Assembly (NCBI GenBank): GCA_964270895.1
Contig: OZ185446.1
Direction: 5' to 3' (one strand)
Length of the DNA: 64,000 bases
Source of the DNA: Podarcis filfolensis
Taxonomy: Eukaryota
Every line of letters starts with the position of its first letter. Position 1 is the stretch's first letter. Below, piece by piece: positions 6,151 to 52,300 of the stretch. Under the pieces are notes generated by a model that had not been told where the DNA came from, made no database searches, and saw nothing but the letters and a program-made list of their open reading frames with translations. A program made the translations under genes and the position numbers.

Positions 6151-6501
6151 TGTCACAAACTGATAAAGGAGAGAGCTGTGTTCTTGTTATGCATTTGCTC
6201 AATGGCTCAAAGTTTATGCATTTTAGCTAAGGAAAAATAGGGATTTTGGTGCAGTTTAAAACTGCCTGCACAGTCAGTTTTGGGTTTTGGGAAACCCATT
6301 CCTTCACTCCAACAAACCCCAGCAAAACTCATTAGTGAGCCATTTGAATGTCTTCTGTTCAGCTACCTGTTAGAGCATTCATCTTGAAGAAGAATGAGCA
6401 ATACACAAGAGAGTCAGGGTAACATTAATAATTAGTCTTGACAAACAACGAGTGGAATCAGAGGTTTATGAAGATGTATTTGGGAAACGGTAAACTTTTA
6501 C

Positions 6502-6676
6502 CTTGTCGACATTAGCTCGTGTTTTAGCAGACGTTTCAACATAGTTAACATTCCACTGATCAGCTCTGTTTTTTGCTTCTTCTACAGAAACCTGTCTTTT
6601 GTCTTCCAAATCCGATTTGTTACCAACTAGCAAAAATGGAACATTCTCATCTTCTTTTACCCTTAAAATCTGCTCT
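6502..6676 (-). CDS. RALA: RALA exon 4
   Basis: 175 nt, AG/GT bounded; (R)[58 protein letters not shown] with NKxD and SAK GTPase motifs. Confidence 0.98.
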
Positions 6677-11310: not shown

Positions 11311-11541
<231 letters not shown>

Positions 11542-12752: not shown

Positions 12753-12884
<132 letters not shown>

Positions 12885-22186: not shown

Positions 22187-22390
22187 CTGCTGAGGAAGGG
22201 CCAGGAGCGGCGCGCGGGGAAGAGGAGGAGGAGGACGGGGACGGGGACGCAGCTCGACGCGGCCTGCGCCTGCCTGCCTGCCTGCAGCTCCCGGGCCGGC
22301 GGCACCTCAGTCTCTGGCTGGCTGGCGGGCGCGCCCTGGTCGAAGCCAGCTCCTCCCGCTCCTCCTCCCGACGCAGCCGAGGCGGAGGAA
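22187..22390 (-). other. RALA: RALA non-coding exon 1 (5' boundary approximate)
   Basis: Donor CAG|GTGAGA at 22187/22186 on the minus strand within the CpG island; exon 2 has an acceptor upstream of its ATG. Confidence 0.7.
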
Positions 22391-22479
22391 GGGGGCGAGG
22401 CGGGGCCTAAAACAACCCAACGCCGCCGCCGCCGCCGCCTCGAGCGCCTTCCGGGCCGCTTTCGGGGGCGGGAGACGCG

Positions 22480-22569
22480 GCCGCGGTTCTCTGTGGCGGG
22501 GCGGGTGTCGGCTTCTCCTCAGGCGCCGCTGGGCTCCGTAGGCCCTTCCTGAGGGAGGGAGAGAGAGAG
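22480..22569 (+). other. YAE1: Candidate non-coding first exon of YAE1 (5' boundary approximate)
   Basis: Strong donor GAG|GTAAGG at 22569/22570; the YAE1 ATG exon is preceded by acceptors (AG at 28351-28352 and 28368-28369) and is not in a CpG island. Confidence 0.5.
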
Positions 22570-23096
22570 GTAAGGGGGGCCCCGCGCGCCAAGCCGCCTT
22601 CCCGCCTCAGGCGAAGGCTCCGCCCGCAGCCGCCGCTCTGCGCCGCCGGAGGGGGAGGATCGTCCGGGTTTCAATGAACGAGGCGTCGGGGTGGAGCGAG
22701 AGGAGGAGGCGGCCTCGAGCCCCGCAGCCCCCGCCCCTGGGAGGCCTTCCGACGGGGCCGGAGGAAAGACGGCTGACCCGCTCGCTCTCTCCGACGCCGG
22801 CACCAGCAGCAGCACCCCCGTCTTCCCCAGGACGGCAGCCGGTTGAGCCAGTGACTGGAAAGGCAGGTATCCCTTTCCGACCGCCAGTCCGCCATTAAAC
22901 GACTCCCCCGCCTCGGGAAGGCGTGGGGTGGGGAAACCGGGTGTGTCCCCCCCCCCGACTAGGCTAAAGGCCGCCGTCCAGCGGCAGAGCACCTGCCTTG
23001 CGTGCAGAAGGCCCCCGCTTCGCTCCCCCCGTGGCAGGAGAGACACTCCCCGCCTGAGGCCATGGAGAGCAGCTGCTGCTGCCGGTCAGTGTAGAG

Positions 23097-23292
23097 CAGC
23101 CTTTCTCAACCTCGGGCAGCGGCGGCAGCAGCTCTCCAAGGCTTCAAGCGGGGAGCGTCTCTCCCGCCACGGGGGCTCCCAGGTGTTCTTGAACTACATC
23201 TCCCATCATCCCTGGGGCACTGGCAGTGCTGGCTAGGGATTATGGGAGTTGTAGTCCAGCAACACCTGGGGACTCAAGGTTAAGAAAGGCTG
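23097..23292. mobile_element. hAT-like MITE
   Basis: TIRs CAGCCTTTCTCAACCT / AGGTTAAGAAAGGCTG; internal ctcccatcatccc...gggagttgtagtcc hairpin. TSD not evident. Confidence 0.6.
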
Positions 23293-28458: not shown

Positions 28459-28575
28459 ATGTCCTGGGTGCAAGCTGCAGTCAGCCAGCACAGAGAAGAT
28501 GTATTTGATGAAGATGCAGATGAAATGGACATAGCTCAGAAAGAATGGAAGAGCACCATGGAGAAACGAGTCAAA
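28459..28575 (+). CDS. YAE1: YAE1 first coding exon
   Basis: MSWVQAAVSQHREDVFDEDADEMDIAQKEWKSTMEKRVK|gtaatt, recognisable as the vertebrate YAE1 N-terminus. Confidence 0.93.
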
Positions 28576-29301
28576 GTAATTATATGGTTTGGGTTGGGGA
28601 TTGACCACATCATTGACATAAAAAAATAGCTATTGAGATTCCAAGCTGGATTAGCCTTTAGAAGGTTTAGCAGGTCCACACATACTCCGACACACCTCAG
28701 TCAGCGCAGAGGCAAATAAGGTGTAGGGAGGATGTGTTGGTTGCAGGGAGAAGATAATCCATATTGGGGAAAAGGGAGAGCCTTGGCTCACTGGCCTTCA
28801 CTGCAGAGTTGCTGATCAGAGGATTAAGGGTCAGCTATAGTGTTCTGTTTGGGAGAAACATAGTTCTGGAATTAAGCAGAGAAAGTCATTTTCAGATGAA
28901 ACTAACGGCAATCCACAAGGATAGCTTAACTGTTAATAATGCACTGTCTTGTGTCATGCTATATAATCAAAGATTCAATTTTCCTCTTTCTTTTTTTTTT
29001 TATTTGTTCAGTCCATGCAACTGGAAGGGCTGAAAAAGATCTCACACTTTTGTTATTGTGCCGAATATCCTCTGTCTGCTCCAGAAGCACTTTTTTCATG
29101 ATGAGGTTGACTTTTTAAAGCTACATGATTGGCACACATATTATGTGTAAGCCACACCTCTAGAGCAAACATTTTTATAACTGCAGATGGACCTCATTTC
29201 ATGATGGCTTATTTGAATAAGCCAGGCAGATACTGATGAGTACTGTACTGTTTCTTTTTACATCCTAGTTGTTAATGTGATTTTGATCTCTTTGCTCAAA
29301 G

Positions 29302-29423
29302 GAAGGCTATAGGGAGGGAGCAGAAGCTGGAAAACTGCTGACAGTTCAACAGGGTTTTAATCAGGGGTATAAAGAAGCAGCAAGGAAGATGATCTCATGT
29401 GGCCAACTCAAAGGAACCATAAG
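29302..29423 (+). CDS. YAE1: YAE1 second coding exon (Yae1_N motif)
   Basis: 122 nt; EGYREGAEAGKLLTVQQGFNQGYKEAARKMISCGQLKGTI(S), with the GYxxG...G...QxGFxxGY motif. Confidence 0.95.
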
Positions 29424-30120
29424 GTATGTAGTAAAGCAGCATTTTAAAAAAAGGAATGGAAATTAATTGTACAAGTTGTTAAACTGATAGCAGACCTCCA
29501 CCAGAGAAATATATCTATTAATATAGTGCCCATTTAAATTATGAACACTTAACTTTTTATCCATTCTTTATCGTCACATCCTGCAGGGAACTGGGGTGCA
29601 CAGCCAACACAGCAGGATTTAACACCTTGCTCATCAGCTGATGGGGGTGCGTTAAATCCTACTCAATTCGGTAGGATTTAATGTAAACCTCTTCACGATC
29701 AAGAAGGTTTTGCATTGAAATTCATTCTAACAAAATCCCCTTCCATCTTACCAGCACCTTGCTTCCTGCAGGTTACTTTGAAGTTCTGACAATGGGACTT
29801 GTCACCAGATCACCTGATGCCATTGTGATGTTCGGTGATTGACAGGAGGACAGATAAGGATCTCTCCTGTGAAGCCAAAAAGGCTCCTCACCCCTTAATA
29901 TAGCCACTTGTCCTGATACAATGTCACTCTCTGTTGAACTTGAGCTACTGGAGAACAGAAAAAGATGGCAACAGTAGTCCGTTTGGTTTGTAGCATTTGA
30001 AAGCTACAGCCAACTTGTCCTTCCGTGCTGCTATGAAACCTGGAGGCAGCCTCTTCCATGTAGACCTCCACTGAAGGTGCCTTATAGGATGCACTGTGGA
30101 AGGAGGAAATTTTTAGACTA

Positions 30121-30349
30121 CAATGGTACCTCAAGTTACAAATGCCCCAGGTTACAAATGCTTCAGGTTACAAACTCCGCTAACCTGGAAGAGTTGCCCC
30201 GAGTTGAGAACTTTGCCCCAGGATGAGAATGGAAATCGTGTGCCAATGGTGCAGCGGCAGCAAGAGGCCCCATTAGCGAAAGCATGCTTCTAGTTAAGAT
30301 CAGTTTCAGGTTAAGAATGGACCTCCGGAACGAACTAGAGATACCACTG
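30121..30349. mobile_element. pogo/Tigger-like MITE
   Basis: TA-caatggtacctc...gagataccactg-TA. Confidence 0.75.
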
Positions 30350-30706
30350 TACTCCATGCCTGCCATTTCTGAGCAAAGACTGTCTCCTGTCTCTTGATTT
30401 CCCCCAACTATCATGGGCTGTAGGAACTTGATTCCATTATAATGAGTATCTCAGGCATTTGCTAGATAGAAAGCAGGAAATGATACACCGTACTAGAAAA
30501 AGGTTATTTGATTGGTACCATGGTGATTTGTAGAATTCTTATACGGCGCTCCAAATTGGAATACAAAACTATTCTAGATTAATGTTCTGCTCAGTTGCCC
30601 TTTATGAATGAGAATAAATATGGGAGGGGGATAATTTTTTTTTAAAGCTGTCTTCTTATTTACATGTGGTCTCATGCAAGATCCATTTTTAACTTTGTTT
30701 TTATAG

Positions 30707-31145
30707 TGCTCTTTCGTTCTGGTGTCAGCACAATGGATGCAGTTCTGGAGTGCTGAGTGAGGTAACTGACCTGCTGAACGAATTGGGAAAATACGAAGAA
30801 TCTGTGTTTAGAAGTCTTAACTCTACCCACCTGCAGCCCCATGTTGAAGACTTGATGGATACTATTGAGGATATGGACCTCGGTCATGCCCTCTTACCTG
30901 AGAAACAGCATGATGGAACTACAGGGGGAAGAATCTCTGAAAACGGCATTGAGTTTAGTGGACAGTGCTGCAGAAATGATAGCAGGACTGGATCCTCCCA
31001 AGAAGAATGTTGCAGGAAGAGAAAAGGTGGCCCTGATTCCAAAAAGCCAGTGTTTACTTGGCTAAAGGAAAAAACTATCAATTTAGTGGATCAGCTAGGT
31101 TTGCCACCAGACACAATTGAACACATTCGACTATTGCAAAGTTAA
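30707..31145 (+). CDS. YAE1: YAE1 last coding exon
   Basis: ttttatag acceptor; ALSFWCQHNG...HVEDLMDTIEDMDL...TWLKEKTINLVDQLGL...LLQS-TAA. The three exons total 678 nt = 225 aa + stop with consistent phases. Confidence 0.93.
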
Positions 31146-32110: not shown

Positions 32111-33035
32111 GGAAAGCAGCCTCGAGAAGTGCAGTTCTTGCTACTCACGGGAAGGTTGATTATGGGTCAATGTGGCCCCCCAAAAGATTAGCCTCCTCTC
32201 TCCCAAATAATATGAGTTCTATGGGTCTTTTGCTGCCCTTACTTTGCTGTACTATAGCTACACTACTTAACTCTACCTGATTCAGACCAAGAGAAGTCCT
32301 GTGTGTGAGACAGACAGACATACACTCATGTAAAAATACTTACTTCATCTTACATGTAGAGCAAGGTGAACAAATTGTCTGTGCAAGGACAGATTTCAGG
32401 AGAGAGATTCATACCTGTATCCAGTAGAGACTGCACACAAAAGAGTATAATTATGGGAAAGGGCTGGGGTACAAAAGTTTCATTGTAGTGTAAAGATGGT
32501 TCATTTATCTCTTAATTTTAACTAAATCAATGCTATCTGGAAAAATGTCCCTATGTGACTAACATTTGATGGAATCAACACCCTATTTTTAAAAGATCTC
32601 GTCTGATTGGGAAAAAGGAAGCTTTAGTGTAAAGAAAAAAGCCCAATTTAGACAAACTTTCAAGTGGACTAGAGTTCTGCCACAGGGTGTGACCAGTATA
32701 AAGATCAAAGTTGAATTAAAATAACCCACCCACCCTTGCCAAAAAATGTTTATTCTACTAAAAAAAAGTTCCTAAAGCTTTGTTTAACATACTACTTCAG
32801 AAAACCTACTTTTTCTAAACACTCACTATAAAATAACCCTTACAAAGTTGAAACTTAATGTTTAATAAGGTGGTAATCTCTGCATTCAGATTGCTTTTGT
32901 GACTTAAAACGTAACTTTTTCCAATGTTTTTCACTAAGCAGAATTAGTTTTGCCCAGTTGTAACTTGTGAGAGAAATAAACCAAGTATTACACTAAAAAT
33001 AATAATACTGTTGCTCAGTTTCACAAGTAGCCACA

Positions 33036-33174
33036 CTACTGCTGGTTATGTTCAACTTGTTGGTCTTTGCAGTTTTCCTCACAAGCTCCGTCTTTGCTCA
33101 GAGAAGTTTCCTCAGCTTTTTGTTGGGTGGCTTTCTTGAAAATTGCTCTCATGAGAACTGGAATTGACATACAC
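33036..33174 (-). CDS. MED1-like exon 17 (terminal, short)
   Basis: cttctcttag|G CMSIPVLMRAIFKKATQQKAEETSLSKDGACEENCKDQQVEHNQQ-TAG. Confidence 0.88.
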
Positions 33175-35813
33175 CTAAGAGAAGGGCAAAGTCATCCAAT
33201 ATTTAAGGAATTGCTAATTCACTAAATATAATCTGGCTGCTTCATATGCAGAACTAACTGACTGGTGGATAGAACAAGCTGCATTTGCCACTGTCTCCAA
33301 ACAAGTCAGCGCAGTGCAGAAAGCTTTATAGATTACATAAAATAAATTTCTAAAGTTCCATGCCAGTTCTTCTGTAAGGTGACATAAAGGTAAAGGCACC
33401 CCTGACAGTTAAGTCCAGTTGCGAACGTCTCTGGGGTTGCAGCGCTCATCTCACTTTACTGGCCGAGGGGGCCAACGTTTGTCCGCTTCCACAGACAGTT
33501 TTTCTGGGTTGTGGAAATTATGACTAAGCTGCTTCTGGCCAAACCAGAGCAGCGCACAGAAACACTGTTTACCTTCCTGCCAGAGTGGTACCTATTTATC
33601 TACTTGCACTTTGATGTGCTTTCGAACTGCTAGGTTGGCAGGAGCTGAGACTGACAACGGGAGCTCACCCTGTTGTGGGGCCTCAAACCGCCAACGTTCC
33701 AATCTTATTTTGCATTGCTCACTCAACAGGAGCAGTTTGAATCTTTAAAGTTGCATCTCACCACACTGCTGAAAATCCTACTCATGCTCGATGTTTCACA
33801 AGTATTTCCTATCCCTCCACCACCCATTTCTTTCATCAATTTCCTGATCCTTCTAACTTATAATAATAATTTTATTAGTTGTACCCTGCCCATATGACAG
33901 GGTTGCCACAGCCACTCTGGGCAGCTTCCTCCTATAACAACATTGTTTTACTACAATTGTTGTTGTCAACAACAACAACTATCAGCCTTTTAATTTCCTT
34001 CAACACTTCAAGCTCTTTCCCGTCAGAGCAAGGGAGACCTTGCCCACTCCTGAACCTCTCTGTCTTCTGGCCACCTTTACTCTGCATGCAGAGTTGCTAG
34101 TGTTGCCGCTGGTCCAGCCAAAAGGCTATGGCAGGCAGTGATACTGAGGCCTACCTGAAAGTGGTCCAAAGACCACTGCTGAGACTCAGCCCACTGATGC
34201 TTAGACAGTGGTCTAAGCTGCCCATTACAGAAGCAAAGGAACCTCTAGCTGCGCTAACTATTAAAAGATGGAGGAGATTTTTAGTTCCCTTGAGTTCCAG
34301 AGAATTTCACACTGACATACAGTGCTCAACTAACTCTTCTGACCATCTGGAGCTAGACATTTATGGAGCTTGTAGGTAGTTTATTTTGGTTGCCTGTTTC
34401 TCACGTCTTAAGCCTGATGGAGCTATTCCACTGTGTTGTGCTTTCCTATGAAAGCTTACTCAGAAAGCTTACTCAGTATTATTAAGGTCCAGTTCCTCCA
34501 GCAAACTGTCTAAATGCATGCATCATTTGAGAATATCCTTTTTAAGAAAGCTGAATTGGCCTGTGAAACCCACCATTTTTAATAAATTCTTCATTACAAT
34601 GTTTAAGATGGTATTGTTTCTCCTGCCCCAATGTTTATTCAAATACTGAGAAAAATTTCCCGTTACATGAAATATTTTTCAAATCCTTTAAATCACTTAA
34701 AAGTTTCTAGCTGCTGTACAAAGTTATTAAATTTATAGATAGCCACCCATTGGTTTACAAACCATTCCATTATACATGACACAAAAGGAAAAGGGATTGG
34801 AGGGACAAGAAAACTTGGCCCCTATATATTATAGAAGTGTTACGTACCGCTTCAGGACTCTTGTGAGATAATCATTGCTGCAGATTAATGCTCCATCTTC
34901 AGAATGTGTATGAAGAGTGCACATAACGTCCCTTGAACTCAGAACATCGACCATCACTAAACAGAAGAGGGAAAAAATGCTCTAAAAACAAGTGTGACAT
35001 TATAGTAGAGACAACAGTAAGAATTATTAATAACCACCAAATCTAGTCAATCCTTAAATAGAAATTCTTTCTGGTCACTGCATTGGTTTTATTTATTTTC
35101 CTGAAAGCATGCATGCTTCGTGGGAAGAGGTCACATATTCATGCTCATTCCATGCTGACTGTAAAAATGAGCAATTACAAATCACTACAAGATAAAAATA
35201 TATATGTCACCAGTAATTTCAAAAGAAGTTCATTCACACATCTACCTATGAGTAACAGGCATTTGAACTGGCTCCTGTTATCCCATCACCAGCCCAATCC
35301 AAAGACGTGCACATTGGAAGGATTAACAAAACAGTAAACAGGCTGTTCACCTGTTGCAAGTTTATCCCAAGCCATCTTCAAAGCCGGTGTGGTTCAAGTT
35401 TAATCCACAGATTATGTGATAAAGTGCAACATCTGCTTACTTTTTAATATTCCCAACCATAGTATAAAACTGGGAATCAGACCTAATTTATACCTAGGTA
35501 GTCACATCGCAAAATACGCATTTTCACCCTGGGACCATAGGGTGAAAGATGGACTGTAAATGACATAATGTGCTACTTTTTGTACCAATAGCCCCCAAAC
35601 CAATTTAACAGAGAAAAACACAAACACTAGACACACACACACACACACACACACATACTTATTGTGCAATAGTAGAAAAGAGTTTATATAGATGGCCAAG
35701 TAGTAAATGGGAAGAATTTGCCAGTTTCTTCAATGTGTGCTAAAGTAAGAGCCCCTTTGTGTATAACTATAACCATATTGTACATCACCATGAGACACTT
35801 GTGTAGAAGACTA

Positions 35814-35855
<42 letters not shown>

Positions 35856-38800
35856 TGGCAGCCCTGCTTAGGGAAGCTTTTAATGTTTGACGGACTACTG
35901 TATTTTAATATTTTGTTGGAAGCCACCCAGAGAGGCTGGGGAAACCCAGCCAGATGGATGTGGTATAAAAAATAATAAATTTATTAATTATTATTATTAA
36001 TTATTATTATTATTACCACCTCTTTTCAGACCTTATTTATGAATACGTGGCAATAGTCACAGAAGTGATCCAGCTCCTCCTCTCTAGTTCCTTACCTCTG
36101 TGTGTTCAGACTGCATGGGGAGATGGGCAGGTTAGAGGAAGGCAGGAATTGATGAAGCAAAATTTGGGGTGTTGGTTCTAGCAAGGGACTATTTTTGCTC
36201 TACATGAGGCACAAAGTGTCTTGGGCCAGCACTTTTCCCATTAACATCTGAAAGCAGTCACAAGGGCCAGCTATTTAGGGCTTTGCACAGTGCTGCTCTG
36301 GGAAAAGGGAGGTAGTATTTGCGATGAACTGGTTATTGTGTCCATGTGTGGTATGGACATCCAGTCTGTTCTTAACACTGAAACACACATATACACATTC
36401 ACACGTTCTACCCCGGCCTGAGCCAAATGAGGCTACATGTGTAGTGCAAAATGCAGCGAGTGCATTTCTGCACCACGTTCCCTGCTGACTTTTTGTTTGC
36501 CTGTGTGCACCCAATACACCTTTCCTTTGGAGACATACCACAGGCTAGGTTCTCCTCCAATGGATGCTGGAATGTTACTGAAAAGCTAGTGGCTTTTTGC
36601 TGAAAGACGTCAAAATGAAGCAAGTCTGATGAATCTGGAAGGAAATAACTGTTTAGTGACTGTTTGGGCTAACCCTGTAGCAACAGAGCTAAACGTTTAA
36701 TTTGAACTAGAGATATAAATTAGTGGGTGTAGTCAGAAAACATTTGTATTGATTTCCAAGTATTCTATATCCCTTAACTTAAAACATGACCATTGAAGTA
36801 GGAGTGGGTTGGCTTTTGCTAGACTCAAGGAGTCCTGCTTTGTACACGCTCATGAAGTTTCATGGTACAAACACCAAATGAAATACAGTTGCTGAAAATT
36901 TCCTTTTCAGTTTCACTATCTCCAAAAGAAATAAGTTGTAAGGTGTCAACACTGTTTGGCTGGAATCCAAACAGTTCCAAGCACACCTGAAAGCAGGTCC
37001 ACGTGAATACTTCACTCATTTTTAAATCTCTGCCTGCAGCAACTTTTGCTGAGAAGGGAGGGCCGTAGCTCAGTGGCAGAACATGAGTGCCTTGCCTGAG
37101 AAGGTCCCACGTTCCACCCCCGCCATCTCCAGATCTGACTGTGAGAGAACCTCACCTGACACCCTGGAGAACTGATACCAGGGTAGTGTAGTACTGAGCT
37201 ATGTAAGAAAAAGGGGGGGGGGCTGAAAACAGACTATATAGTTTCAAGATGGGAGTTGCAAACGAAACAAAGAAGAAGGGGGAGAACATTGAAGCCAATG
37301 CACATTCGATTTGCGTGATCTGTTCTACGCTATTCATATTGTTGCACCCCACCTTCAATCTCCAAGGTTTCAGGGATTCCAGGTGCTTAAAGAGGGTTTG
37401 TGATTTCTTTTGGGAATGAGGCACAGCGGAGAATGTGATGTCTTTATGATGTATGGTTTATTTACACGTATATACAAACAGCCTACAATGGAGGGGCTCA
37501 CAACATTAGTTTCTCCCACAGCAGCAGCCTTGGATTCAAACAGAAATCAAATATTTCTCTTTGACCCTGTCTCCAGCTTGCTGCTTTTCTTCCTGGTCAC
37601 TTCACTGCTTCTCTCAACTCTGACTTTATCTGTGAGAGGGGGCCCCACCCATTTGCCATCTTGCCCCTTAATCCCCCTTAACGGCTCATCGCTCAGGTTT
37701 ATCACCTCACGAGGAGGCTAGCCTCGCTATTCCTTGGTTAAATTCTAACACTTGCTAGATCCAAGGATTAGAGGGGTCTGGCACCCAGCTTAACCTCCAC
37801 AGATATGATGGGCTCACAATTTTTCCAGCCACTTTCAATGAATTGGATCACAAAAATGCTGAGAGGGGAGTAGAACCATTATGCTGCCCATCACACCTCC
37901 TTATTTCTAATACCTGAATATCTTGTCACCACCATCCAAGGTGGACCTAACTTTACATGCATCCAACATACAAATACAGGTCCCAATTGATATATTTGAG
38001 CTTCACAGCAAATACTGAAGATAAACTCTTCCCAGAATTCACTACTGGAAACACAGCAGAATCAGAAAGAGGTGTGAGCAAAAGATGTGCAAACATCTTA
38101 CCTTCACACTCAGTTGTCTCAGACACGCAGCTGCTAATGAGGGTGTTATATGCTGCTTGACGTCTGAGAACTTCAATCATATCAGGCACACATTTGGGAT
38201 GGGTGAAAGGGATTTTCTTGACCATTGCTCCAGCCATATCAGATTTTTCTATGCCTTTATCTAGGAAATAGCTGTGTTTTGGGCAGCCTGGAAGAGACTG
38301 ATCATAAACCGTACAAGATTTGTTCATGGATGTAGTAGCAATTGTTTCCTGCATTGATTTTTTTAAAAAGTAGTGAATAGGAAACATGAATAAAAGGAAC
38401 TTCCCTTCAAAAACATACCATATTTATTTGAGTCTAATGTACCATCAAATCTAATGCGCACCTCAATTTTCAGAACCCTGAAACCAAAAAAAGTATTTGC
38501 TGGCGAATGTAAATGTGCCATCGAATCTAATGCGTACCTTAATTTTCACAACAATAAGGGTGAGCATTAGATTTGAGTAAATACGATAGTTGTCTAGAAC
38601 AGTACAAAGAATGTGACACTGGACTTTTAAGCAAACCTTGAAATAAGCTGCTTATATTATAGATGCCTTGACCACCCATTTTTAAACAAGTTATTAAATG
38701 GAGTAGTCTCTGCACTGGATCTGAAGAGTTGCTCAGCTCTCAAGCCCAATGGCACCGTGGGGAAAAACCAACCTGTCTGTGTATACATGGTAGTTTAAAG

Positions 38801-41800
38801 TGGATTTTATGCATTTTATGTGTGTTTGTTTTTCACCTTGTCCACACGACATTGCCCTCATCTAAGTAGAAGTCCACACTTCCCTCTGCCATTTAATTCA
38901 GAACTTCCCAATCCATGTGATAATGGGGGGAAATCCAATGTAAACTCAGATGTTACCCAGACACACTGAAGCACATTGTGAGGGCCACTTCTTTTTATGT
39001 GTGTGACAACATTTTGCTGGGTGAACTGCCAACTATTCCTGCACCCCCTACTTTTACTGGTGAGGTTTCCTTGGTGGGCTTTTAGTGGGACTGAGACAGA
39101 GACGCACTTTGGGGGAGGGGGTGAACCCACAAGTGTGGTATATTGGAAAACTTGTATCTCAATAATAATAAATATTGGCCACCCACATAGGTGAACAAAT
39201 CATTGACATGCCCACAGTGGACTTCAGTTTTCCAGAACTCAAGGGGAGGGGTGGGAAAATACTAACTGAGAGGAGGGGACAGCACAGCCCATGAACATAT
39301 CCCATGAAGTGCGGCCCAGAATCATCGAGATGGAGTTCAGCTGAAAGTGCCCATGTATTGATGAATGCACATGGACAGAAGTGCATGTGGACAAATGGTG
39401 TCTGTGTGAGCCATGTGCACATTAACCCTCTGGTCTGTATACCAGTAGTGCCAGTTTCTGCATAGTAGGATTTATCACACACAGCTGTATCAAGGGCAAC
39501 TTGTACCAAAAAGAACTGAATATAAACTAAAAGCATAGCCAAGAAGACATAAGAAATAAATATAATCCACCAACAGGATTCACTCCAGTTGGATCTTTCT
39601 ATCAATTTATTCCCCACAATGAATTCATTCTACGCTACATCTTTATGAAACTTTCCCAGCTATTATGAGACCATGTGTGCAAATGGTTTTAACTTGAAAC
39701 GAGACTTTTAAAAAAGTAGTGTTATGGGTTAATCTAAGGCCGCATTTAGCTTTTTAATGACATCTCATGGATGACAGCCCCACAATTTTGCACATTAGAG
39801 TCACTGAATTGAGTGTAATTTTGTGTGTGAGAGAGGGGGAGAGTAAGGAGAGAGCGCGTGCACACACAATTTGTATATGTTGTGTAAAGGCCAACCTGGG
39901 CAAAGAATTGCAACTGTGACTAGGTCATAGTCAAATTTAGCAGTGTTAAAACAATCTATTCCAGAAAATTCATGACTTCCCAGAATTCAACACACAGCTT
40001 TCAGTAAGCTGTAGAATTATGACTCATTTAGCAGCTTCATTCCTGACCTCATAACAACTGGAGTGAATACCAACAATTGGAGTATAATTACCACAATGAA
40101 GGAAGAAGTACTTGCTATCAAACCATGCGGATGATTTTCTGAAAGGGCAAACTGAACAATCAGCTCATGTAGAGGACCTGGCTTTACTCTAGCAACTGGA
40201 AGCCCTAAAACCAAATTAATTTTTTTCATTAGTACTGTACAAGAGCATCATTAAAGATGGAATGCATTTGAGAGAAACAGCATCACATGAGAAGAGGCAA
40301 AGAGAGACATGATCACACAATGGTTATCAATAAATCAATGGGATGGTTGCCAACAGAGGGACAGGGCTATTCAGATCAGCAAGCACTTGTGCTCCTGAAT
40401 GGGCAAGTTGCTCGTGGGAAGGCTGGGACAAATACCAGCACGAATGCTATACTCCTAGTACAGAAGCAGCAATACTTGGTTCTCATTTTATGCTCCTGCC
40501 GCTTCTCCCTTTCTAACTTAACCCTGGGGCCCCATCAGCCTTCATACCCCTGTAGAAATCACAGGGGAAGAATTAGCCAAATGTTAATTAGGGTCTCTTG
40601 AAATGCTAGCATGTTAGGAGGGAGGGTGGAGGTACAAAATTATGTACTTAATTAAATTAAAACATGCCTGTAAGCTCCTGTAGTTTATGAATACTGGTTG
40701 AAGACAGAGGAAAAGGACAGTTCTGGTAAAACATCAGGAAAAAGCAAGCTGATAATGGTGCAGAAATTACTTCCTTCAGAGGCAGGAATCTGGGGCTGCT
40801 GAAGAAAAGGGTTGAAAGTTAAGCATCAGGTAAAAGGAAGGTAGTTTGACCATTACTCTGGTAGCACAATCTTATAAGTTAAGCCAATGTTTCTCAAGCT
40901 TGCGCCCCCAGGTGTTGTTGGACTACAACTCCCATCAACCCTGACCACTAGTCCTGCTAGCTAGGGATGATGGGCATTGTAGTCCAACAACACCAGGGTA
41001 CCAAAGTCTGAGAAAGGTTATTCCAGGATCTCAGGCAGGATTTTCCTTTATCAGATCCGGAGGATCTGTGGCCCTCCAGATGTTGTTGGACTTCAACTCC
41101 CACCATCCCTGACCATTGACCAGGCTCACAGGGGCTGGTCAGAGCTGGAGACCACCAGCACTGCTCACAGTAGACAGCACCTTCAAAGGGAAACATCAGT
41201 TGGTGAGGAGAGGGGGCAGAATAAGAGTTCAGCCTGGCCTGAATCCAGATCAAAAGCACATACTGGGTCATGGATTGGCAGCTGCCTTTTCTTCAGACTG
41301 AAAATGGCCAGTTTAAGCATGTACTCTTAAGAAGTGTGAAGAACACAATGTGTAATTTGAAGACGCACTTCCAGGTTTTGTACACATTTTCCTACCATGT
41401 TCCTCACAGTGTCTTAAAATGACAGACTATTAAGAAGTGAATTTGATGTGCTATCACACACCCATTATAACCCACAGAGAGCAAGGGATTTCCATGTTCA
41501 GTTATACTGATAGGAGCATGAATGATGCCCTCAAGTCTTACCCATCTCCACCAGTCGGCGAATTCACAAGTGAGGGTGCAAGAGGGAGTCGGTGGACTGC
41601 ATCAGCCCCTCCTATTATGACAAGCACCTTCCTGCCATCTATTTTCAAGCCTGATGGAAAGAGAAGACACAAATATGTCAGACTAGTGAAGATGATACAC
41701 AAATGGCCTTGAGGTCTTTGTCCAGGAACATTGATTTCCCCCAATACTTAAGTGAATTGTGATTCTAAGTACTATAGCCGGTGATGTTATTCTGTCAGAG

Positions 41801-44800
41801 AACAGAAGTTTGCATGATGGATGCCTTGCTTGCCATTTGAACCCATTTTGTCTTTTGTTATTTCAAAGCTAGTTCTGGACTAGTCTGAGGGAAGGCCCTG
41901 TGGCAGTATCTATTTAGGCCCCCTGTGAGTTTCTATGGTGTGGGTCTGGGAAGCCGGCAGCCATTTTAATAATAAAATGGCCGAGATTTTAAGTCCCCAC
42001 AATGCCTTGGATGGATACTATGTGAACCAGCCCAGGGCACTGATGGGAAATTTAATATGGTGGTCCTCTTCCATTTGTTGTTTAAAAACTAAAGTGGGGG
42101 AGCAGGTGGGCCAAGCTGTGGTGGTCAGCTCTGATGGACTCTGCTGAAATGCTAAGCACTGTCTTTAGTCCTCTACCATCATGACTGATTGTTATTGGGG
42201 TTTTTTGACCCAAGCAGATAGCAGGACAAATAAAGCAACAGGCCACCACCAACTCTTAAACTTGTCCATCTTCTCACAAAATGACCACATCCAGACCAGT
42301 GCACTTCATTTTTCTCCTTCATTGTTCCAGTATTTTTCTTCACATACGTGCATTGCAATATTAACACAGTTGTGTGCCATGTAAAAAACATTACATAAGA
42401 CAGTTTCTTTTTTAAAACACCACACATCCCGGAATGGATATTAGAGAAATTTATACCCCGCCCATCTGGCTGGGTTTCTCCAGCCACTCTTGGCGGCTTC
42501 CAACAAAATATTAAAATACAATAGTCTGTCAAACATTAAAAGCTTCCCTAAATAGGGCTGCCTTCAAATGTCTTCTAAAAGTTGTTTTTCTCTTTGACAG
42601 CTGGTGGGAGGGCGTTCCACAAGGCGGGTGCCACTACCAAGAAGGCCCTCTGCCTGGTTCCCTGTAACTTCACTTCTCGCAGGGAGGGAACCGCCAGAAG
42701 GCCCTCAGAGCTGGACCTCAGTGTCCAGGCAGAATGATGGGGGTAGAGACCCTCCTTCAGGTATACTGGGTCGAGGCCGTTTAGGGCTTTAAAGATCAGC
42801 ACCAACACTTTGAATTGTGCTTGGAAACGTACTGGGAGCCAATGTAGGTCTTTCAAGACCGGTGTTATGTGCTCTCGGCAGCCGCTTCCAGTCACCAGCC
42901 TAGCTGCCGCATTCTGTATTAGTTGTAGTTTCTGGGTCACCTTCAAAGGTAGTCCCACGTAGAGTACATTGCAGTAGTCCAAGCAGGAGATAACTAGAGC
43001 ATGCACCACTCTGGCGAGACAGTCTGCGGACAGGGAAGGTCTCAGCCTGCGTACCAGATGGAGCTATGGGTAGCTTCCACTAAAAGAAGCTAGCAATATT
43101 ATCAAGCTGTCAACTTGAATACATGTATCAATACACTTGAATGCCTGTAGCAATACAGAATGAAGGCTAAGGTTAAGGTTAAGGGTCCAGAAGTGACAGC
43201 AGTGGGATTAGACAGAGATTTCTGCTCCAATCACACAAAAGCTTGTGGCTGTGGGTGTGCATGCGTCCATACCTCAGTGCTTTGCATGCAGGAGGTTTCA
43301 GGTTCAGTCCCCCAAACCTCCAGGTAAAGGATTTTAGGTGGCAGAGATGGGAAAATCTCGACTTTACACCCTTCAGAGAGCCGCTAGCATAACCATGCAA
43401 TCCTGTCCATGTCCCATTTCAGTGGGGCGTCATCATACACAAGTAGGGATAGAATTGGTCTTCGTTTACTCACTCAAAATGAAGCATGTGTCATTTAGTG
43501 AGTGTAGAATCTATTTTAAAAGGGAATGCAGAATGAGACCACCACTATGGAGGTTTTCTAGTCGATTCACAATCCCTCACTCATCACTAATAATAATATT
43601 TTTGTGGGACCTTTTATTTTTTATAGATGTATTTTATTGGTTTGTTTACTGTAATGGGTTTTAGTGTTTATACTGTGTTGTAAGCCACTTTGAGGGATGG
43701 TGGGTGGCGCTGTGGGTAAAAGCCTCAGCGCCTAGGGCTTGCCGATCGAAAGGTCGGCGGTTCGAATCCCCGCGGCGGGGTGCGCTCCCATCGTTCGGTC
43801 CCAGCGCCTGTCAACCTAGCAGTTCGAAAGCACCCCCGGGTGCAAGTAGATAAATAGGGACCGCTTACTGGCGGGAAGGTAAACGGCGTTTCCGTGTGTT
43901 GCGCTGGCTCGCCAGATGCAGCTTTGTCACGCTGGCCACATGACCCTGAAGTGTCTCCGGACAGCGCTGGCCCCGGCCTCTTAAGTGAGATGGGCGCACA
44001 ACCCTAGAATCTGTCAAGACTGGCCCGTACGGGCAGCGGTACCTTTACCTTTAAGCCACTTTGAGTCACTTTTGCGAGTAAACTGACAAAATAGTAATTA
44101 ACTCACCTGGGGTGAGTTGTTCCTCTAGAATTTGATACGGCGATAGATAAAATTCAAGGTTCATAGGGCTTCCTATAGAATTTTAGAAAATGAGATGGAT
44201 TAAACAGAAAAAGCACATAACGGATAGTAAGGTAAGCTATGTAAGCCTAGGATGTTTGATCCCCTTCATCGTTTTTGTTTGCTTCCAATGCAAAGGACTC
44301 AATACCCCAGGGCCATATTGTGCGACAGGGGACCCAGACAACTGTTTGGGGTTGCAAGGAGATTGTTGTGGAGAGCTAGCTATCACCTCAACAGTTTAAA
44401 CATATAAAACAAGTAAGTTCCTTTGTATAAATCACAGAATTGTAGCATTGGAATGGACCACTTGGGTCATCTAGTCCAACTCCCTTTAATGCAGGAATCT
44501 AATCTAGATTCCTTAGATTAAGAATCTAATCTAATGCTCTACCAACTAAGCTATCACTCCTAGGATGAAATTTCTTCCTGATAAATCATGCATACAATTC
44601 ATGCACAAATATTGAGGAGCAAGCTGCAGGACACCCTAAAATAAAGTACAGTGGTACCTCGTGTTAAGAACTGAAGTTGTTCTGGAGGTCCGTTCTTAAC
44701 CTGAAACTGTTCTTAACCTGAGGTACCACTTTAGCTAATGGGGCCTCCCGTTGCCGCCACACGATTTCTGTTCTCATCCTGAAGCAAAGTTCTTAACCTG

Positions 44801-47800
44801 AGGTACTATTTCTGGGTTAGCAGAGTCTGTAACCTAAAGTGTCTGTAACCTGATGCATCTGTAACCTGAGGTACCACTGCATTTAAGAAGGTTGAACAAA
44901 TGGGGGGAGCCGCCCCAAGAGATGCTCCAAAGTGCCATTTTGGGACAACTCTGCTAGAAGCAGCTGCACACGGTCAAGTAACTACCAAAGATAAGAAGAG
45001 TTATAGGCAGAAGAAAAAGGCATTGGGGGAAGCAGTGGCCCAATGATCGGACACCCAGGAAATCACTAGCTGGTCTTGGTTTTAACTTTTAAGGCAGTTG
45101 TGCAGAAAGTGCACAGTTTGATCCTTTATCATCATCTAATACATGGATCACACACACACAGCCGCAACAGGACTAGCACCTTATCAGGAAAAATAAGTGA
45201 GATGGGGGGGGGGAGCAGCATTACTCATAAACAAGGAGAAGTGTATGTGCAAAGGGACCAAAACGCAAGGAGGAACTAGTCAGGACCTCTCCTCTATTTT
45301 CACAGCTACCTAGAAAAAGACTCGGGGACAGGAAAGGGGTTGTACACACTCACGTTGGTCTCACCGTCATCTCTAGTCAAAAAGCGGTTTTGGAGCACAA
45401 AGTCCTGTAAGTGGGAACCTCGGGTTACGTACCATCCTCCTTACGAACGCTTTGGGTAACAAGCGCCGCTAACCCGGAAGTAGATGTTCCTGGTTGTGAA
45501 CTTTGCCCCGGGATGTGAGCGGAAGTCGCACGCCGGCAGCGCAGCAGCAGCGGGAGGCGCCATTAGCGAAAGTGCGCCTATGAACAGTTTCAGGTTAAGA
45601 ACAGACCTCTGGAACGAATTAAGTTCGTAACCGGAGGTACCACTGTACTACAAACAACAATGCCTCTGTCATACATGCTACCTACAAAGTCACCGGAAAT
45701 ACCCAAATCATAGTAATACCCAAGGTTTTACTGTTCTTTAGCATTCTTAAATTATGCTTGGCTACCATGATCACACAGATATCTACTTCAGTCTGAAGAA
45801 AGAAAGAAAAATCAGTTACCTCCACTTCTTGGGTTCAGATAGCCAACTTTTCCACATAGTATTTCAGTGACTCTGTCCATACCTGGTGTTCTGTTTTTAA
45901 AGTATATACAGTAATCAGTGAGATCAAGCATGCACTTAAATGCCTTAAAATATTTATTATTATTATTACGGCAACCTTAGGCTGGAGTGCAAACATTTGA
46001 ACTTGCACCTTTCCCACCACTGACACCTACCTGCTCAAAGCAGACAGTGAGCAGAGGTCTTTTTCCAAAGCCAGGAAGGCAGCAAACACCTTGGATTTTG
46101 TTTCACTAGAAAAGAAAGACCTTATTGGAGGAAGGGAGTTTTATATACAATATAATAATTTAAGTAATGTAATTAAGTTGCAACAAACATACCTGCTTCC
46201 TGGAATCTGATAAATATTTAACATGTCTGCTAGCATGTTTCCAAAGGCATCAAAATTTTCCATTCTAAAGAGCAAAATACATGCAACAATTGTCAGTGCT
46301 GATAAGGCAAAGAGAGCCATCTAGCCAATATTTGGGAAAACACCACCACCGAAGTGAATCTGATATTGGCAGCATTGCGCTACCATCAAACAAGACATCT
46401 AAAAAGCAGCTAAATAACTTTGGAAAGTGGCTCAAATTGGTCCTGGATGGAGGGCAGGCAGGGATGGAAGCAACAGTTATCAGAACTATCTATTCATTTT
46501 TACCTCAACCACAGAAAACGATATGGGAGCAGTGGCAAAGGATTTTTATTTTATGAAATTAAAAATTTAAAAATTGTGTGTGTTAAAAATCCACCTAGCG
46601 CATATGTACCTTAGAAGCTGCAAAAGATCTTCACAGGTCTAGAAGATGAAAGAACAGAGGTTATGGTTTTCTAAAGAGGGGCACTATTTTCTTAAAAACA
46701 AAGCAGAAAGGAGAAATGACATAAGCCGAACCTTAGTCAACACGAAACCTTAGCAGACACTACGAGGAATATCCAAGGATGTTTTTCCCAAGATCTATTC
46801 AGGAACAGTCACTTTTGGCTGTAAACCAGAATCTATAAAGGCATATATTTCCTACTCTTCTCCCACCCGTAGTTGGAGTGTGACTGCATCATCTTGAAAG
46901 CCCTTGGGGTCCCTTCCAACTCCACAATTCTATGATTCTATGTTAAAACGCCCCCCCCCCGATGCACCATGTGCTTCACTGCATCCACATATTGCATTTA
47001 CTTCCTTTATTGGACTACCCCTCCAGACTAGGAAAATTCAAATTTAACGGGGGAAATTGTGGGCTAGCAGTTGGATGAGGACATTATGTGAATGAGGAAC
47101 AACCAGCTTCAAACCCACATTAAGTTCCCCATGTGGACGAGCCCATAGTTGCTACCTCATGTCAAGCAGTCTCATCAGATGGGGACAAATTAAGGAGAAA
47201 TGGTCACCCAGCTATAAGGAAATTTAACAGTCCTTGTGCAATTATTTTGCAGTTCAGCTTTTGTGAATGAAACTGCTATTCCCACAAATTTTGCAATTAC
47301 AACTGCAGATGTTTAGTTTGGTTGTAGCAGCAACAGCGTAAGTGTTATAACTAATGTAAAGTTGTCCCTTTGACTTAGATGCAAGTATCTCACTTGCTCC
47401 ACAGGGTTTATTATGAAGCTATAGATATTTCAGAAGAACTAGAAAAGCAGGATTATATTTCATCAGATCAGAACACCCAAAGGAAAACAACTTAAAATTA
47501 CCAGGGGTTTTTTCCCAGGGTGAGCCAACCTGACATCCACCACTTTTCCATCCTTCTCCAGGTGAATCTCAATGTAGAAGGATTTGGATGTTATATAGCA
47601 AACTGCCCCACTGGGGCTCACATAATAATTAAGTCTACAGAGGAAAGAAGGAAGAAGAAAAAATGCATTGCTTATTTAAAAGTTACAGTGTGCAACGGAA
47701 GCCTAGCAGGGCTGGCCCAAGACATTTTGGCACCTGAAGTGAATGACAAAATGGTGTCCCTCTCCCCACCAGGAAGGAAGGGTGAGTGAAGATCTACATC

Positions 47801-49264
47801 AGGAACAAAGTGATGAGGACTAAATATCGACAGAGTGGCTAGAGAAACCCAGCCAGATGAGCCATGTTATGTACTGAAGTTCTCACCCTGGGCCAGCAGG
47901 GGGATACTGTAGATAGTTCAGGTCCACATATGCAAATAAGGGATTGAAAGTGACATTCAGTGATTGGCTAGTTACAGAAAATGGTTACTGCTGCGTTCTA
48001 GTGGAGCTTTATATAAGCAGGCTGGCTGAACCCTTCAGTTCAGTTCTGTTCTGGGTCTGTGAATAAAGAAGAGCTGTTTGAAGAATCGCTGTGTCGTCTG
48101 ATATGTACACCCACAACTTAACAGGTCAGGTATAAATTACTACTACTTCTACTACTACTACTACCATCTGTTGCTGCTGCCCCTGTGGATCCTGCCACCT
48201 GAGGCAGGATGCCTCACTTGCTGCACGGATGGGCTGACCCCGAATGCAAACTTTTTTCTTCATTGTGGTTGATGTATACGGGTTCTACAGAAAGGAGTGT
48301 TTGCACCCAGCTTTCCAAATGGCTGTGTTTCAGTTCCTGAATAAACGTCAGCAGCAGCAGCAGGTCTGTACATCAGTGGAAGACCACATGCTTTGGACTG
48401 AACCCCCCACCCCACCCCAGGTTCAGCTTCCAACATCTCCAGGGCTGGGAAAGGCAGATGCTGCAAGGCAACTCAGAGATCAAAATACTAATAGCTGGAT
48501 TTGGCATAAAGCAACTTCCTACTCCTGCATTTTCTGAAATGCCACTTTGTAGTGGAATTTATCTACGCTTTGTCAAGAGGCTGAGGTGAAGTAGTAATCA
48601 TTTCACAGGCCCAAGTATGGGAAATGTCCCAAAACATTCTGCCCGAGGGGAACTCCTGAACTGCTCATGCTCATCTCTTTCAAGGATATCACAGGAAAAT
48701 GGCAGTAAGCTGCAGCTTAGAGGATGCATTAGCCACTGAATACACCGAATGGCATGTACGCATGTCATGTGAAAATTATACAGCCATAGAAACATACCTA
48801 GCAGTCCCACTGCTGCGGGAAGTGAAGAGAGCGTATTTAGTAGATGCAGAGTATACTTACCCCTTTCGATTTGACAAAAGTGACAGCTTGTTCATTGTTG
48901 CAGCCAAAGGTCCTGCTGCACACATGAAAAAATAGGGAATAAGGTTCCATCACACAGAATCAATGTGTTCAATAAAAGCAGTCAACAGATCCCATACATT
49001 TAAGAGCAAAAGACCAAAGATTCTTGCTTAATTGTGCTATATTGCTCATCGTACCTTTTGTAAAAGGAAGGCATCTAGAACCCAAAAACACATTCGTTGC
49101 ACAAGATGACAAGACAGAAGCTAGACATCATTTCCATCAAACATAACAGAAAATTAGGCAATCCTAGAGTTGATTACCGTGCAAGGTTCTTTGTATTTTC
49201 TCAAGGCAAATAGATATGGGAGACTCTGATGTCTTACTCGAAGTCCAAGAATGTTTGTCCTCAC

Positions 49265-49325
<61 letters not shown>

Positions 49326-52300
49326 TTGTATCATATAATCACATGCACATGCATCATATAATCACATGCAAGTCAGAAAATTGGCTGGTATGTTCAAAGC
49401 AAAATAGGGAATTCAGCACTCTCAGTCAGGCCTCCTATATCTTGACCTTCATTGCCCCCTTTGGGGTGCCAGATCACAATGCTGCAGCAGCAGTGGAAGC
49501 TACAACTGGCAGAAGACATCCCCCCCACCAGGCTTTATAACAGACCAAGTAACCCCACATCCCAGTATCAGCTGGGGGTGGATTGGAAAAAAGATAAAAT
49601 CAAATGGGGAAAATTTGCCTATTCAATTTTTCAATCCGTAAGGGATTGATTAGCTTTGCAATTACAAAGCATTACAACACTGCCATTTTTATTTTCCATT
49701 CTGACCATGGAATTTGCATCACTCTCCCAATACCACACACAAACTGTCCATTTAATTGCATTTAGTTTCATCCTCGATAATCACAATCAATCAGTATTTT
49801 TGGGAAGTTAAGAATCCCCTCCATTATTCCCACCTAGAGCCATCTTGCCAAAGTTCCCCCTTCAGAGTTATCCATCCAAGTTCAAAGTGGAGATGACAGG
49901 GCAGTAAAATAGCAACCTCACATGTTAAACTTTGGCCCGTCAGGCAGAAAATAAGATGGAAGACCTATACACACAATGACTCACTTTCCCTTCTACTTCC
50001 AATTATTCTCCTCAAGAAAGCATAAAAAAAAAGTTTCTCCCACATTACTCCTCCCCAACAGAACTGATTTCATTACAATTCTTACCATGGAGAGACGAAC
50101 CAGTTCCATAGTTTCACTCCACGGCTTCTGTGAGAATTTTAGACGTAGCTTTTCCATTATGTCATTTGCAGACCCAGATTTCGCAGGATCTGGAAGAAGT
50201 TAAGAGTTTAATTAGCTGAGGGTGTGGAAAACCTTTTTCAGTTCAAGGGCCACAGTTCCTTGCTTGAAGCCTCCTGGGGGCCATGGGCCAGAAGCAAAAG
50301 AGGGTGGAGGAAGAAATGGGAGTAGGCTGGTGTCTTCACCTTCCCTAGATCCCTCTTCATCTTCCATGGAAGCCAGAAGCTTTCTCACAGTTGAAGGAAG
50401 CATTCCACTCAGCAAAACCCTCCAACGGGCTGGGCAAAGGGTGTAGTTTGGGAGGCTGTCTGGCTTAGGGAGATTTGAGGGCCAGATGAGAGGCTCAAGG
50501 TCCCATTTGGTCCCTGGGCTCAAGGTTCCCCACCCCTGATATAGCAAAACAGCCAACTATTACATGACTTCAATGAACAGCCCACACTGCAACAATAGTC
50601 ACTTTAAATTAGGACTATTTAGTCCCAGATGGGTGAGATATTTCAGATTAACTGGCTCATGAACTTGGCTACAATATAGGTACTAATATTAATGGACCTG
50701 TGTTTGGCTTAAATCCCACTCTTCCACCTGTTGAATGTCATAATCTGAAACCCACAACTATTTTAAAAGTTCAGTTTTATATCTTAAGTGTCTTTGACAT
50801 TAAATCAAGATACACACCCACACCCCCCCATATATCATTCTATTTTTTTTTAAAAGATTTTTATTAAAGTTTTACAAAAAAGAAAAATAGAAATTCACAG
50901 AATAAAAAACCATAAATTACAGAAAAAAGAAACACACAAAAGAGAAAAAAAAGAAAAAAATACAGAAAGAAAAACACAACTAATTAAGAAAAATTACATT
51001 TGAACAAAGAAAAAATAAAACCATTCCATTTTTCCAATAACCTCAATTTCATATGCTTATGTTCTTGACCTCCTCGCACCTTCCCCTTTTTGTATTCCCA
51101 TTCAAATATTTAATTCAGCAAATTCTTACCCTTTATCAAATGTTTAAACTTTGTGCCATAACATATACTATATCCCTATTTTTCAACCAATTATCAATAC
51201 CTTTTTTGCATAATCTTAATAACTTTTATCACTAATTACCACTTATTGCCCATCCAAGCACATTTTTAACACTCATTAATTTTATAATATTTCTGAAGAT
51301 AGTCTTTGAATTTCTTCCAGTCTTCTTCCACCAACTCTTCTCCCAGGTCTCGGATTCTGTCAGTCATTTCCGCCAATTCCATATAGTCTATCAGCTTCAT
51401 CTGCCATTCTTCCAGGGTGGGTAGCTCTTGTGTCTTCCAATACTTTGCGATGAGAATTCTTGCTGCTGTTGTTGCGTACATAAAGAAATTTCTATCTTTC
51501 TTTGGCACCAGTTGGCCCACCATGCCCAAGAGAAAGGCCTCTGGCTTCTTAAGGAATGTATATCTAAAGATTTTTTTCATTTCGTTATATATCATCTCCC
51601 AGAAAGCCTTAATCTTTGGGCATGTCCACCAAAGGTGAAAGAATGTTCCTTCACTTTCTTTACACTTCCAACATTTATTGTCAGGCAAATGGTAGATTTT
51701 TGCAAGCTTGACTGGTGTCATGTACCACCTGTATATCATTTTCATAATATTCTCTCTTAGGGCATTACATGCCGTAAATTTCATACCTGTGGTCCACAAC
51801 CGTTCCCAGTCAGCAAACATGATGTTATGACCAACATCTTGTGCCCATTTAATCATAGCAGATTTAACTGTTTCATCCTGCGTATTCCATTTTAGCAGCA
51901 AGTTATACATTCTTGAAAGTATTTTAGTTTTGGGTTCTAACAACTCAGTTTCCAATTTTGATTTTTCCACCTGGAAACCTATTTTTTTATCCATGTTATA
52001 GGCTTCTCTTATTTGAAAATAGTGCAGCCAATCTCGCACCTTATCTTTTAATTTCTCAAAACTCTGCAATTTCAATTTATCTCCTTCTTGTTCCAGTATT
52101 TCCCAATATTTCGGCCATTTGGCCTCCATATTGGACTTTTTAAGTGCCTTTGCCTCCATTGGTGACAACCACCTTGGGGTTTTGTTCTCCAGTAAGTCTT
52201 TATATCTTAACCAGACGTTAAACAATGCTTTCCTGACAATATGATTTTTAAATGCTTTATGAGCTTTGACCTTGTCATACCACAGATATGCATGCCACCC

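Follow-up and report, generated by a model that had tools for sequence, protein, structure and literature searches.

The exon at positions 33036 to 33174 of the 64,000-nucleotide stretch of Podarcis filfolensis DNA analysed here (the window) reads as the genuine last exon of a MED1-like gene (MED1L) that is intact and looks expressed. We regard this gene as a short MED1 paralogue that non-mammalian jawed vertebrates have kept, and the predicted fold of the family suggests that its product probably docks at the MED1 position of Mediator. Canonical MED1 (TRAP220, PBP or DRIP205), a subunit of the Mediator Middle module, has been studied, as the subunit on which nuclear receptors (NR) dock and for its part in driving super-enhancer condensates, almost wholly in mammals, where MED1 is a single gene. 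Most other jawed vertebrates possess, in addition, a conserved gene under selection that encodes the MED1 fold by itself. The gene family, its short length and the very stop codon considered here are already known from RefSeq/GenBank models of close relatives, and a small Med1 form was published in 2008; given this public annotation and the one-line mention of 2008, the value of the present analysis lies in a clean gene model and its framing, not in discovery. New here are the complete 17-exon lacertid model, the intron position common with the giant exon of MED1, the boundary with YAE1, the clade-wide absence of NR boxes, the re-expansion of repeats in gecko and frog tails, and the contrast in evolutionary rate with MED1.

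The last coding exon (exon 17, 33036..33174, minus strand) encodes (R)CMSIPVLMRAIFKK and 31 further residues, followed by a TAG at 33038-33036, in exact agreement with the exon and peptide of the original prediction. Its acceptor is ttgcccttctcttag|G, with the AG at 33176-33175, and the minus-strand reading begins G TGT ATG TCA ATT CCA and ends CAG CAG TAG. With a lizard homologue as guide, a search for junctions joins it in phase 2 to the exon 16 donor, GAAGCG|gtacgt at 34848, and the joined peptide runs ...NDYLTRVLKR|CMSIPVLMRAIFKK, then ATQQKAEETSLSKDGACEENCKDQQVEHNQQ, then stop. The tail had been described as about 30 charged residues; the length holds, with 31 residues between FKK and the TAG, but only 11 of them are charged (5 E, 2 D, 3 K and 1 H) and the remainder are mainly Q, A, T, S and N, so that the tail is better called polar. 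The identical stop is present in Lacerta agilis DNA, as well as in the Podarcis lilfordi and L. agilis protein models, both ending ...QVEHNQQ, and is thus common to three lacertid species.

An AT-rich 3' flank with poly(A) signals and without a remnant Ser/Pro-rich reading frame had also been noted, and both features were confirmed. A+T makes up 67% of the 435 nt past the stop, each of whose three frames is interrupted by stops, and the probable end of the 3' UTR (32749..32866, minus strand) carries ATTAAA at 32866-32861 and AATAAA at 32754-32749, 170 and 282 nt from the stop, respectively. On the minus strand from 33036 to the RALA CpG island (~23000) there is no stop-free stretch of more than 100 aa and none that is Ser/Pro-rich, and tblastn searches at an E limit of 50, with proteins of Hemicordylus, turtle, pigeon, axolotl and Anolis as queries, gave no alignment past 33066. 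Furthermore, the coding region of YAE1 (a Yae1_N protein; 28459..31145, plus strand), identified by tblastx against the YAE1 flank of a hummingbird, ends at a stop at 31143-31145 and converges on MED1L from 1.9 kb downstream. Together, the poly(A) signals and the converging gene leave no room for a long tail exon. The coding segments of YAE1 lie at ~28459-28584, 29302-29424, 30729-30947 and 31011-31145 on the plus strand; the gene is tail-to-tail with the 3' end of MED1L and head-to-head with RALA, and the convergent MED1L/YAE1 pair is also found in a hummingbird (Phaethornis), in L. agilis and in the gecko Heteronotia binoei. Plus-strand poly(A) signals were noted at 32079, 32715 and 32975, and the 3' UTRs of YAE1 and MED1L may abut or overlap.

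The whole coding sequence (57948..33036, minus strand) consists of 17 exons encoding 527 aa in an intact frame, with zero internal stops or frameshifts; 15 of the introns are GT-AG and one is GC-AG. Minus-strand stop-free segments between 50.2 and 33.0 kb encode MED1-like peptides, and exons 2-17 (16 exons, 50189 to 33036; 14 GT-AG introns and one GC-AG) were placed using the 'MED1-like' protein of Hemicordylus capensis (P0243) as a guide. Exon 2 (50086..50189; -D PAKSGSANDIMEKLRLKFSQKPWSETMELVRLSM) starts in phase 1, and the sole upstream ATGG|gtaag on the minus strand, in a good Kozak context at 57948-57945, supplies the 3' end of exon 1 (57945..57948; ATG + G, donor gtaagt) and an N-terminus, MDPAK..., comparable to the MDPVK... 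of Hemicordylus. We also considered an exon 1 within a GC-rich block at 56650-56960, but this block is directly upstream of an L1 ORF1 and is therefore read as the 5' UTR of the L1 element, not as a gene promoter, and ATGG|gtaagt at 57948-57945 fits instead. The element itself is a full-length L1-type retrotransposon in intron 1, in sense orientation (51269-56041, minus strand), in which both ORF1 (342 aa, 55016-56041) and ORF2 (1248 aa, 51269-55012) are open.

Exon 2 is followed, always on the minus strand, by exon 3 (49178..49259), exon 4 (48861..48915), exon 5 (47502..47634; Pfam PF10744, E=1.4e-7) and exon 6 (46610..46638), whose peptide TCEDLLQLL-R, within the folded domain, contains the one LxxLL pentapeptide present in the protein. 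Exons 7 (46193..46264), 8 (46031..46105), 9 (45820..45890), 10 (44107..44172) and 11 (41542..41650) lead to exon 12 (40668..40798), which ends at the GC donor of intron 12, TTACAG|gcatgt at 40667-40666; the resulting junction, ...QELTG|LPVAR, is supported by a Podarcis lilfordi model (P0269). The same model agrees with the junction of exon 13 (40092..40204), and the FIV|SLPGCP junction is likewise confirmed by the P. lilfordi models. Exon 14 (38102..38297; Pfam PF10744, E=1.9e-10), the best-conserved Med1 segment, corresponds to residues 364-448 of MED1 in PDB 7emf_A, and is followed by exon 15 (36539..36634; DSSDLLHFDVFQQKATSFSVTFQHPLEENLAC) and exon 16 (34848..34956; ...VMVDVLSSRDVMCTLHTHSEDGALICSNDYLTRVLK-R), the latter with donor GCG|gtacgt in phase 2 to exon 17. 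An alternative in-frame acceptor, aatgcag|GAA at 38348, lies 51 nt upstream of the exon 14 acceptor and would insert the 17 residues ETIATTSMNKSCTVYDQ (38298-38348, minus strand); this acceptor was set aside because, although in frame, it is unused by the lacertid models, and a donor after ALSE.. in exon 13 was also rejected, being out of frame with both acceptors. Both the peptide ETIATTSMNKSCTVYDQ and the end of exon 13 (STSSFIV) resemble the S-T/M-N-K/N-S-C-F-F-V of birds and turtles at the same point; in squamates the segment may reflect a small duplication or a splice site that has moved.

Membership in the MED1 family is apparent even from single exons: two of them each exceed the Pfam cut-off for Med1 (PF10744; scores of 40.9 and 31.5 bits against 25), and exon 14, the largest segment, matches residues 364-448 of the human and mouse MED1 chains in the PDB. 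A HMMER search with exon 14 against 1.84 billion cluster representatives returned a short group of ~460-790 aa with 52-71% identity and, separately, long proteins of 1400-2250 aa with ~45-50% identity; PF10744 is present in all homologues recovered. Members of the short group are named 'mediator of RNA polymerase II transcription subunit 1-like' by NCBI or, in some fishes, plain 'subunit 1'. Among the matches listed, its tetrapod hosts are turtles, more than 100 birds, squamates, salamanders and frogs, and its other hosts are eel, Brienomyrus, Labeo, Albula, Polymixia, gar, bichir, coelacanth and the chimaera Callorhinchus. No mammal appears among the named members of the MED1-like clade in these matches, in which birds predominate.

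In a tree of 56 sequences (IQ-TREE quick search, LG+C20+F+G4 by PMSF, with SH-aLRT supports), the MED1-like clade (99) and canonical gnathostome MED1 (loach, Anolis and Varanus; 99) are sister groups, united at 91 with both long lamprey copies outside. Vertebrates as a whole reach 100, amphioxus and hemichordates being the successive outgroups. Within squamates (99) the window sequence groups with Hemicordylus (96); both belong to the MED1-like clade, whose internal branching mostly tracks the species tree from chimaera to birds. On this topology the window gene is an orthologue of vertebrate MED1-like, the 'small form' of Med1, nested with Hemicordylus, gecko, turtle and bird proteins, and the duplication is therefore older than the split between chimaera and bony vertebrates. 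Its timing relative to lampreys is only weakly resolved by the tree. Lampreys have two long MED1 genes (P0114 and P0097) of 1590 and ~1810 aa, the longer copy being found in at least four lamprey species; since these copies group together outside gnathostome MED1 plus MED1-like, the lamprey duplicates would have retained the long tail in both.

Within lacertids, the identity of the window protein to Podarcis lilfordi is 97.5% over the C-terminal 239 aa, and that to L. agilis 93.5% over the C-terminal 168 aa. The public lacertid models are partial or split (184 + 168 aa in L. agilis; 218 and 239 aa in P. lilfordi), the L. agilis gene (locus L002, 2189-14235) being annotated as two models. Exons 5-17 align to L. 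agilis without gaps at 94-100% identity, so the gene looks intact in that species too. Over 445 codons the two species give a dN/dS of 0.28 (Nei-Gojobori), from as few as 24.5 synonymous and 24.5 non-synonymous differences, which indicates that the gene is probably under purifying selection.

The premise that canonical MED1 carries its receptor boxes on a very long last exon was upheld: the human chain has 1581 aa, and in loach a single exon of 3.66 kb (3660 nt, compared with 139 nt for the last exon of the window gene) opens at R|CMSIPV, codes for residues 526-1745 (1220 aa) and carries both LxxLL boxes, LTSLL at 666 and LMNLL at 707. Lamprey MED1, like that of loach, has two LxxLL (at 604 and 647) and a tail of more than 1000 aa. 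Exon 17 of the window gene is homologous to the first ~80-135 nt of this giant exon, and the preceding intron has the same place and phase; the last exons of hummingbird and gecko MED1L open at the same junction as well, R|CMS(I/V)P. The original prediction that the paralogue ends exactly where the NR boxes begin was, on the other hand, too precise. The CMSIPV motif begins at residue 501 of human MED1 and the end of the window protein falls at about human residue 545, that is, ~60 residues before NR box 1, if this box lies at ~604 in human, the figure given in the prediction and assumed here.

Nor is the short end a peculiarity of this gene: it is ancestral to a MED1-like clade that spans the gnathostomes, is annotated by NCBI and was mentioned by Bourbon 2008. 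When the stop position was compared across other lineages, as had been proposed, none of the 20 MED1L members with a scorable tail had an LxxLL after the CMSIP motif. Tails typically extend 18-182 residues past the motif: 18 in coelacanth (possibly a partial model), 34 in lacertids, 37 in chimaera, 61-71 in turtles, 78-108 in birds, 110-144 in salamanders, 128 in Hemicordylus and 182 in Discoglossus. The window gene, with a short acidic/polar tail free of NR boxes, shares the feature that defines the clade. There are exceptions in length: in the gecko Heteronotia binoei an acidic Ser/Pro unit of 19 aa, ANSS(A/S)SSLPPLEPLDDR(S/T)E, is repeated in tandem ~23 times in a protein of 991 aa in total, and some frogs have tails enlarged by internal repeats, so that the lack of a disordered region (IDR) is the rule in MED1L without being universal. 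In Heteronotia the terminal exon has grown to ~1.5 kb (locus L003, 42306-43817), and its acidic low-complexity tail is newly arisen.

The proposal that the protein is deaf to hormones and negative for condensates can be retained only in part. The complete N-terminal fold of MED1 is there, with neither an LxxLL after the fold nor a long disordered tail; however, the gecko and frog tails show that 'condensate-negative' does not apply to all members. 'Hormone-deaf' is also too strong, because the sole LxxLL of the window protein, LLQLL at residues 131-135, lies in a predicted helix inside the fold, so that the lack of an NR box concerns the canonical exposed boxes only, and because nuclear receptors contact Mediator also through subunits other than MED1. 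Compared with canonical MED1, the window gene thus shares the Pfam domain, the predicted fold, the plan of 17 coding exons and the position and phase of the intron before CMSIPxxMRAI, but it differs in having a tail of 31-34 residues instead of more than 1000, in lacking the exposed LxxLL boxes that the canonical protein has ~100-180 residues past the motif, and in its neighbours, YAE1 and RALA instead of the RPL19 that adjoins MED1 in loach. Among vertebrate MED1-like proteins the lacertid tail is one of the shortest, and the window provides a complete 527-aa frame where the public lacertid models are partial.

An AlphaFold model of the Hemicordylus orthologue, used in place of the window protein (20-sequence alignment; mean pLDDT 69.5, with 80-94 over most of the core), matched MED1 in the solved human Mediator (7emf_A) in Foldseek with E=1.4e-42, a TM score of 0.80 by target and 36% identity, and the predicted MED1L fold thus appears to match the Mediator-bound domain of human MED1. 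The last helix of the model spans residues 483-507 (SVPVLMRAIFKK and the next residues), with disorder beyond, and the window protein ends 18 residues past the last stretch that can be aligned to MED1 (...SLS), itself near the end of the corresponding helix. Before its stop, exon 17 would accordingly supply the conserved C-x-S-x-P-x-x-M-R motif together with the final helix of the MED1 fold, and a stop placed right after this helix would make the 527-aa product a natural protein consisting of the MED1 N-terminal domain only. We propose that MED1L docks through this conserved fold in the Middle module of Mediator, at the MED1 position, and that a Mediator carrying it would lack the two exposed LxxLL boxes and the ~1000-residue Ser/Pro-rich disordered region.

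That Mediator could assemble without the IDR is made plausible by several observations on canonical MED1. PDB entry 7EMF is itself 'Human Mediator (deletion of MED1-IDR)', ~80 aa separate the last ordered MED1 density from the nearest NR box (PMC7921410), and the beta-strands of MED1 at ~437-481 touch MED24 (PMC7921410); exons 15-16, which correspond to these strands, are retained in the window gene. Furthermore, MED1(1-530) is enough for adipogenesis under overexpressed PPARgamma2, although it is insufficient for normal 3T3-L1 adipogenesis (PMC8091968). The engineered MED1(1-530) and MED1-deltaIDR resemble the window protein in extent (its end corresponding to ~545 in human) and in the lack of NR boxes and IDR, but they are laboratory constructs of canonical MED1, whereas the window gene is natural and separately evolving, and its product is a putative Mediator subunit.

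The main alternative to docking is that MED1L keeps the MED1 fold without being a stoichiometric Mediator subunit, acting outside Mediator or as a decoy for partners of the MED1 N-terminus, which would suit a gene that evolves rapidly and is active, perhaps, in the germline or one tissue only. Its domain indeed evolves several-fold faster than that of canonical MED1: between two lizards, identity is 66% for MED1L (lacertid vs cordylid) and 95% for MED1 (Anolis vs Varanus), between lizard and teleost it is ~38% and 70%, respectively, and the window protein is ~41% identical to canonical MED1. Such rapid evolution weakens the assumption that MED1L simply fills the MED1 slot, as the surfaces contacting Mediator may have drifted or acquired another role. 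The tails, too, are lineage-specific, acidic and prone to repeats, and the gene seems to have been lost in mammals with no obvious replacement, given that no mammal is among the named members and that the two forms were noted only in frogs, fish and worms by Bourbon 2008. Against this, the whole domain, including the strands that touch MED24, is kept under apparent purifying selection, the predicted fold superposes on Mediator-bound MED1 across ~500 residues, and there is no positive sign of another partner. We therefore consider a role outside Mediator rather unlikely, while taking it seriously.

Two further readings would deny that the gene is intact or that it ends at exon 17. A decaying duplicate or unprocessed pseudogene, in which the early stop is a disabling mutation, might be suspected from a tail that, with 34 residues after MRAI, is among the shortest of the clade (Hemicordylus has 128) and from the fragmentary lacertid annotations described above. 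It is nevertheless very improbable, since all 17 exons are open with usable splice sites throughout, the dN/dS and the stop shared by three lacertids speak for constraint, and the family has persisted since before the split of chimaera and bony vertebrates. Even less credible is a long alternative 3' exon elsewhere, encoding NR boxes and an IDR; some bird isoform models do end otherwise (for example the tail of Chiroxiphia isoform X6), but YAE1 occupies the opposite strand, the minus strand down to ~23000 holds no suitable frame, and not one of the MED1L proteins examined, in any lineage, has a MED1-type tail.

Returning to the docking of a short paralogue at the MED1 position, we can offer a tentative account of its origin, which we hold possible but doubtful as a whole. 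MED1L would be a MED1 ohnologue from the vertebrate genome duplications, whose NR-box and IDR half was shed, or never gained, before jawed vertebrates diverged. Sharks' relatives, fishes, amphibians and sauropsids would then have retained the gene for over 400 million years, and mammals would have lost it. An origin by genome duplication fits the linkage of MED1L to YAE1 and RALA: on the human map, RALA and CDK13 are near each other on 7p14 and MED1 is beside CDK12 on 17q12. The loss in mammals is likewise inferred, from the distribution of the sequences. Previously, Bourbon 2008 (PMC2475620) noted 'large and small' Med1 forms in frogs, fish and worms, and C. elegans MDT-1.2 is termed 'MED1L' in Mediator reviews. 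MDT-1.2, too, is the smaller of two Med1 forms, but it probably stems from an independent nematode duplication and has only the name in common with the vertebrate gene. Our literature search found no functional study of vertebrate MED1-like, only Bourbon 2008 and the C. elegans naming having surfaced, and a 2026 paper on fish Mediator paralogues concerns med12 and med13, not med1.

If this account is true, a fraction of Mediator in non-mammals carries a MED1 position devoid of IDR and NR boxes, and the composition of mammalian Mediator is a derived state. The gene would then be a natural separation-of-function allele with which the in vivo contribution of the MED1 IDR and of condensates could be addressed. 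Likewise, if MED1L enters Mediator, subunit composition varies among vertebrates, and chicken, Xenopus and zebrafish offer a natural control for the functions of the IDR and NR boxes.

The remainder of the window is occupied in part by RALA, whose coding exons, with the switch regions among them, lie at 6469-6717, 11311-11541 and 12753-12884 on the minus strand. The CpG-rich segment at 21500-23100, ~10 kb upstream of the first coding exon, is likely the CpG-island promoter of this gene. Reverse-transcriptase fragments occur at ~5277-6226 (minus strand), and a RALA intron contains, at 7913-8884 on the plus strand, an open frame of 324 aa that resembles a Tc1/mariner-type transposase (HTH ... 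DDE-like).
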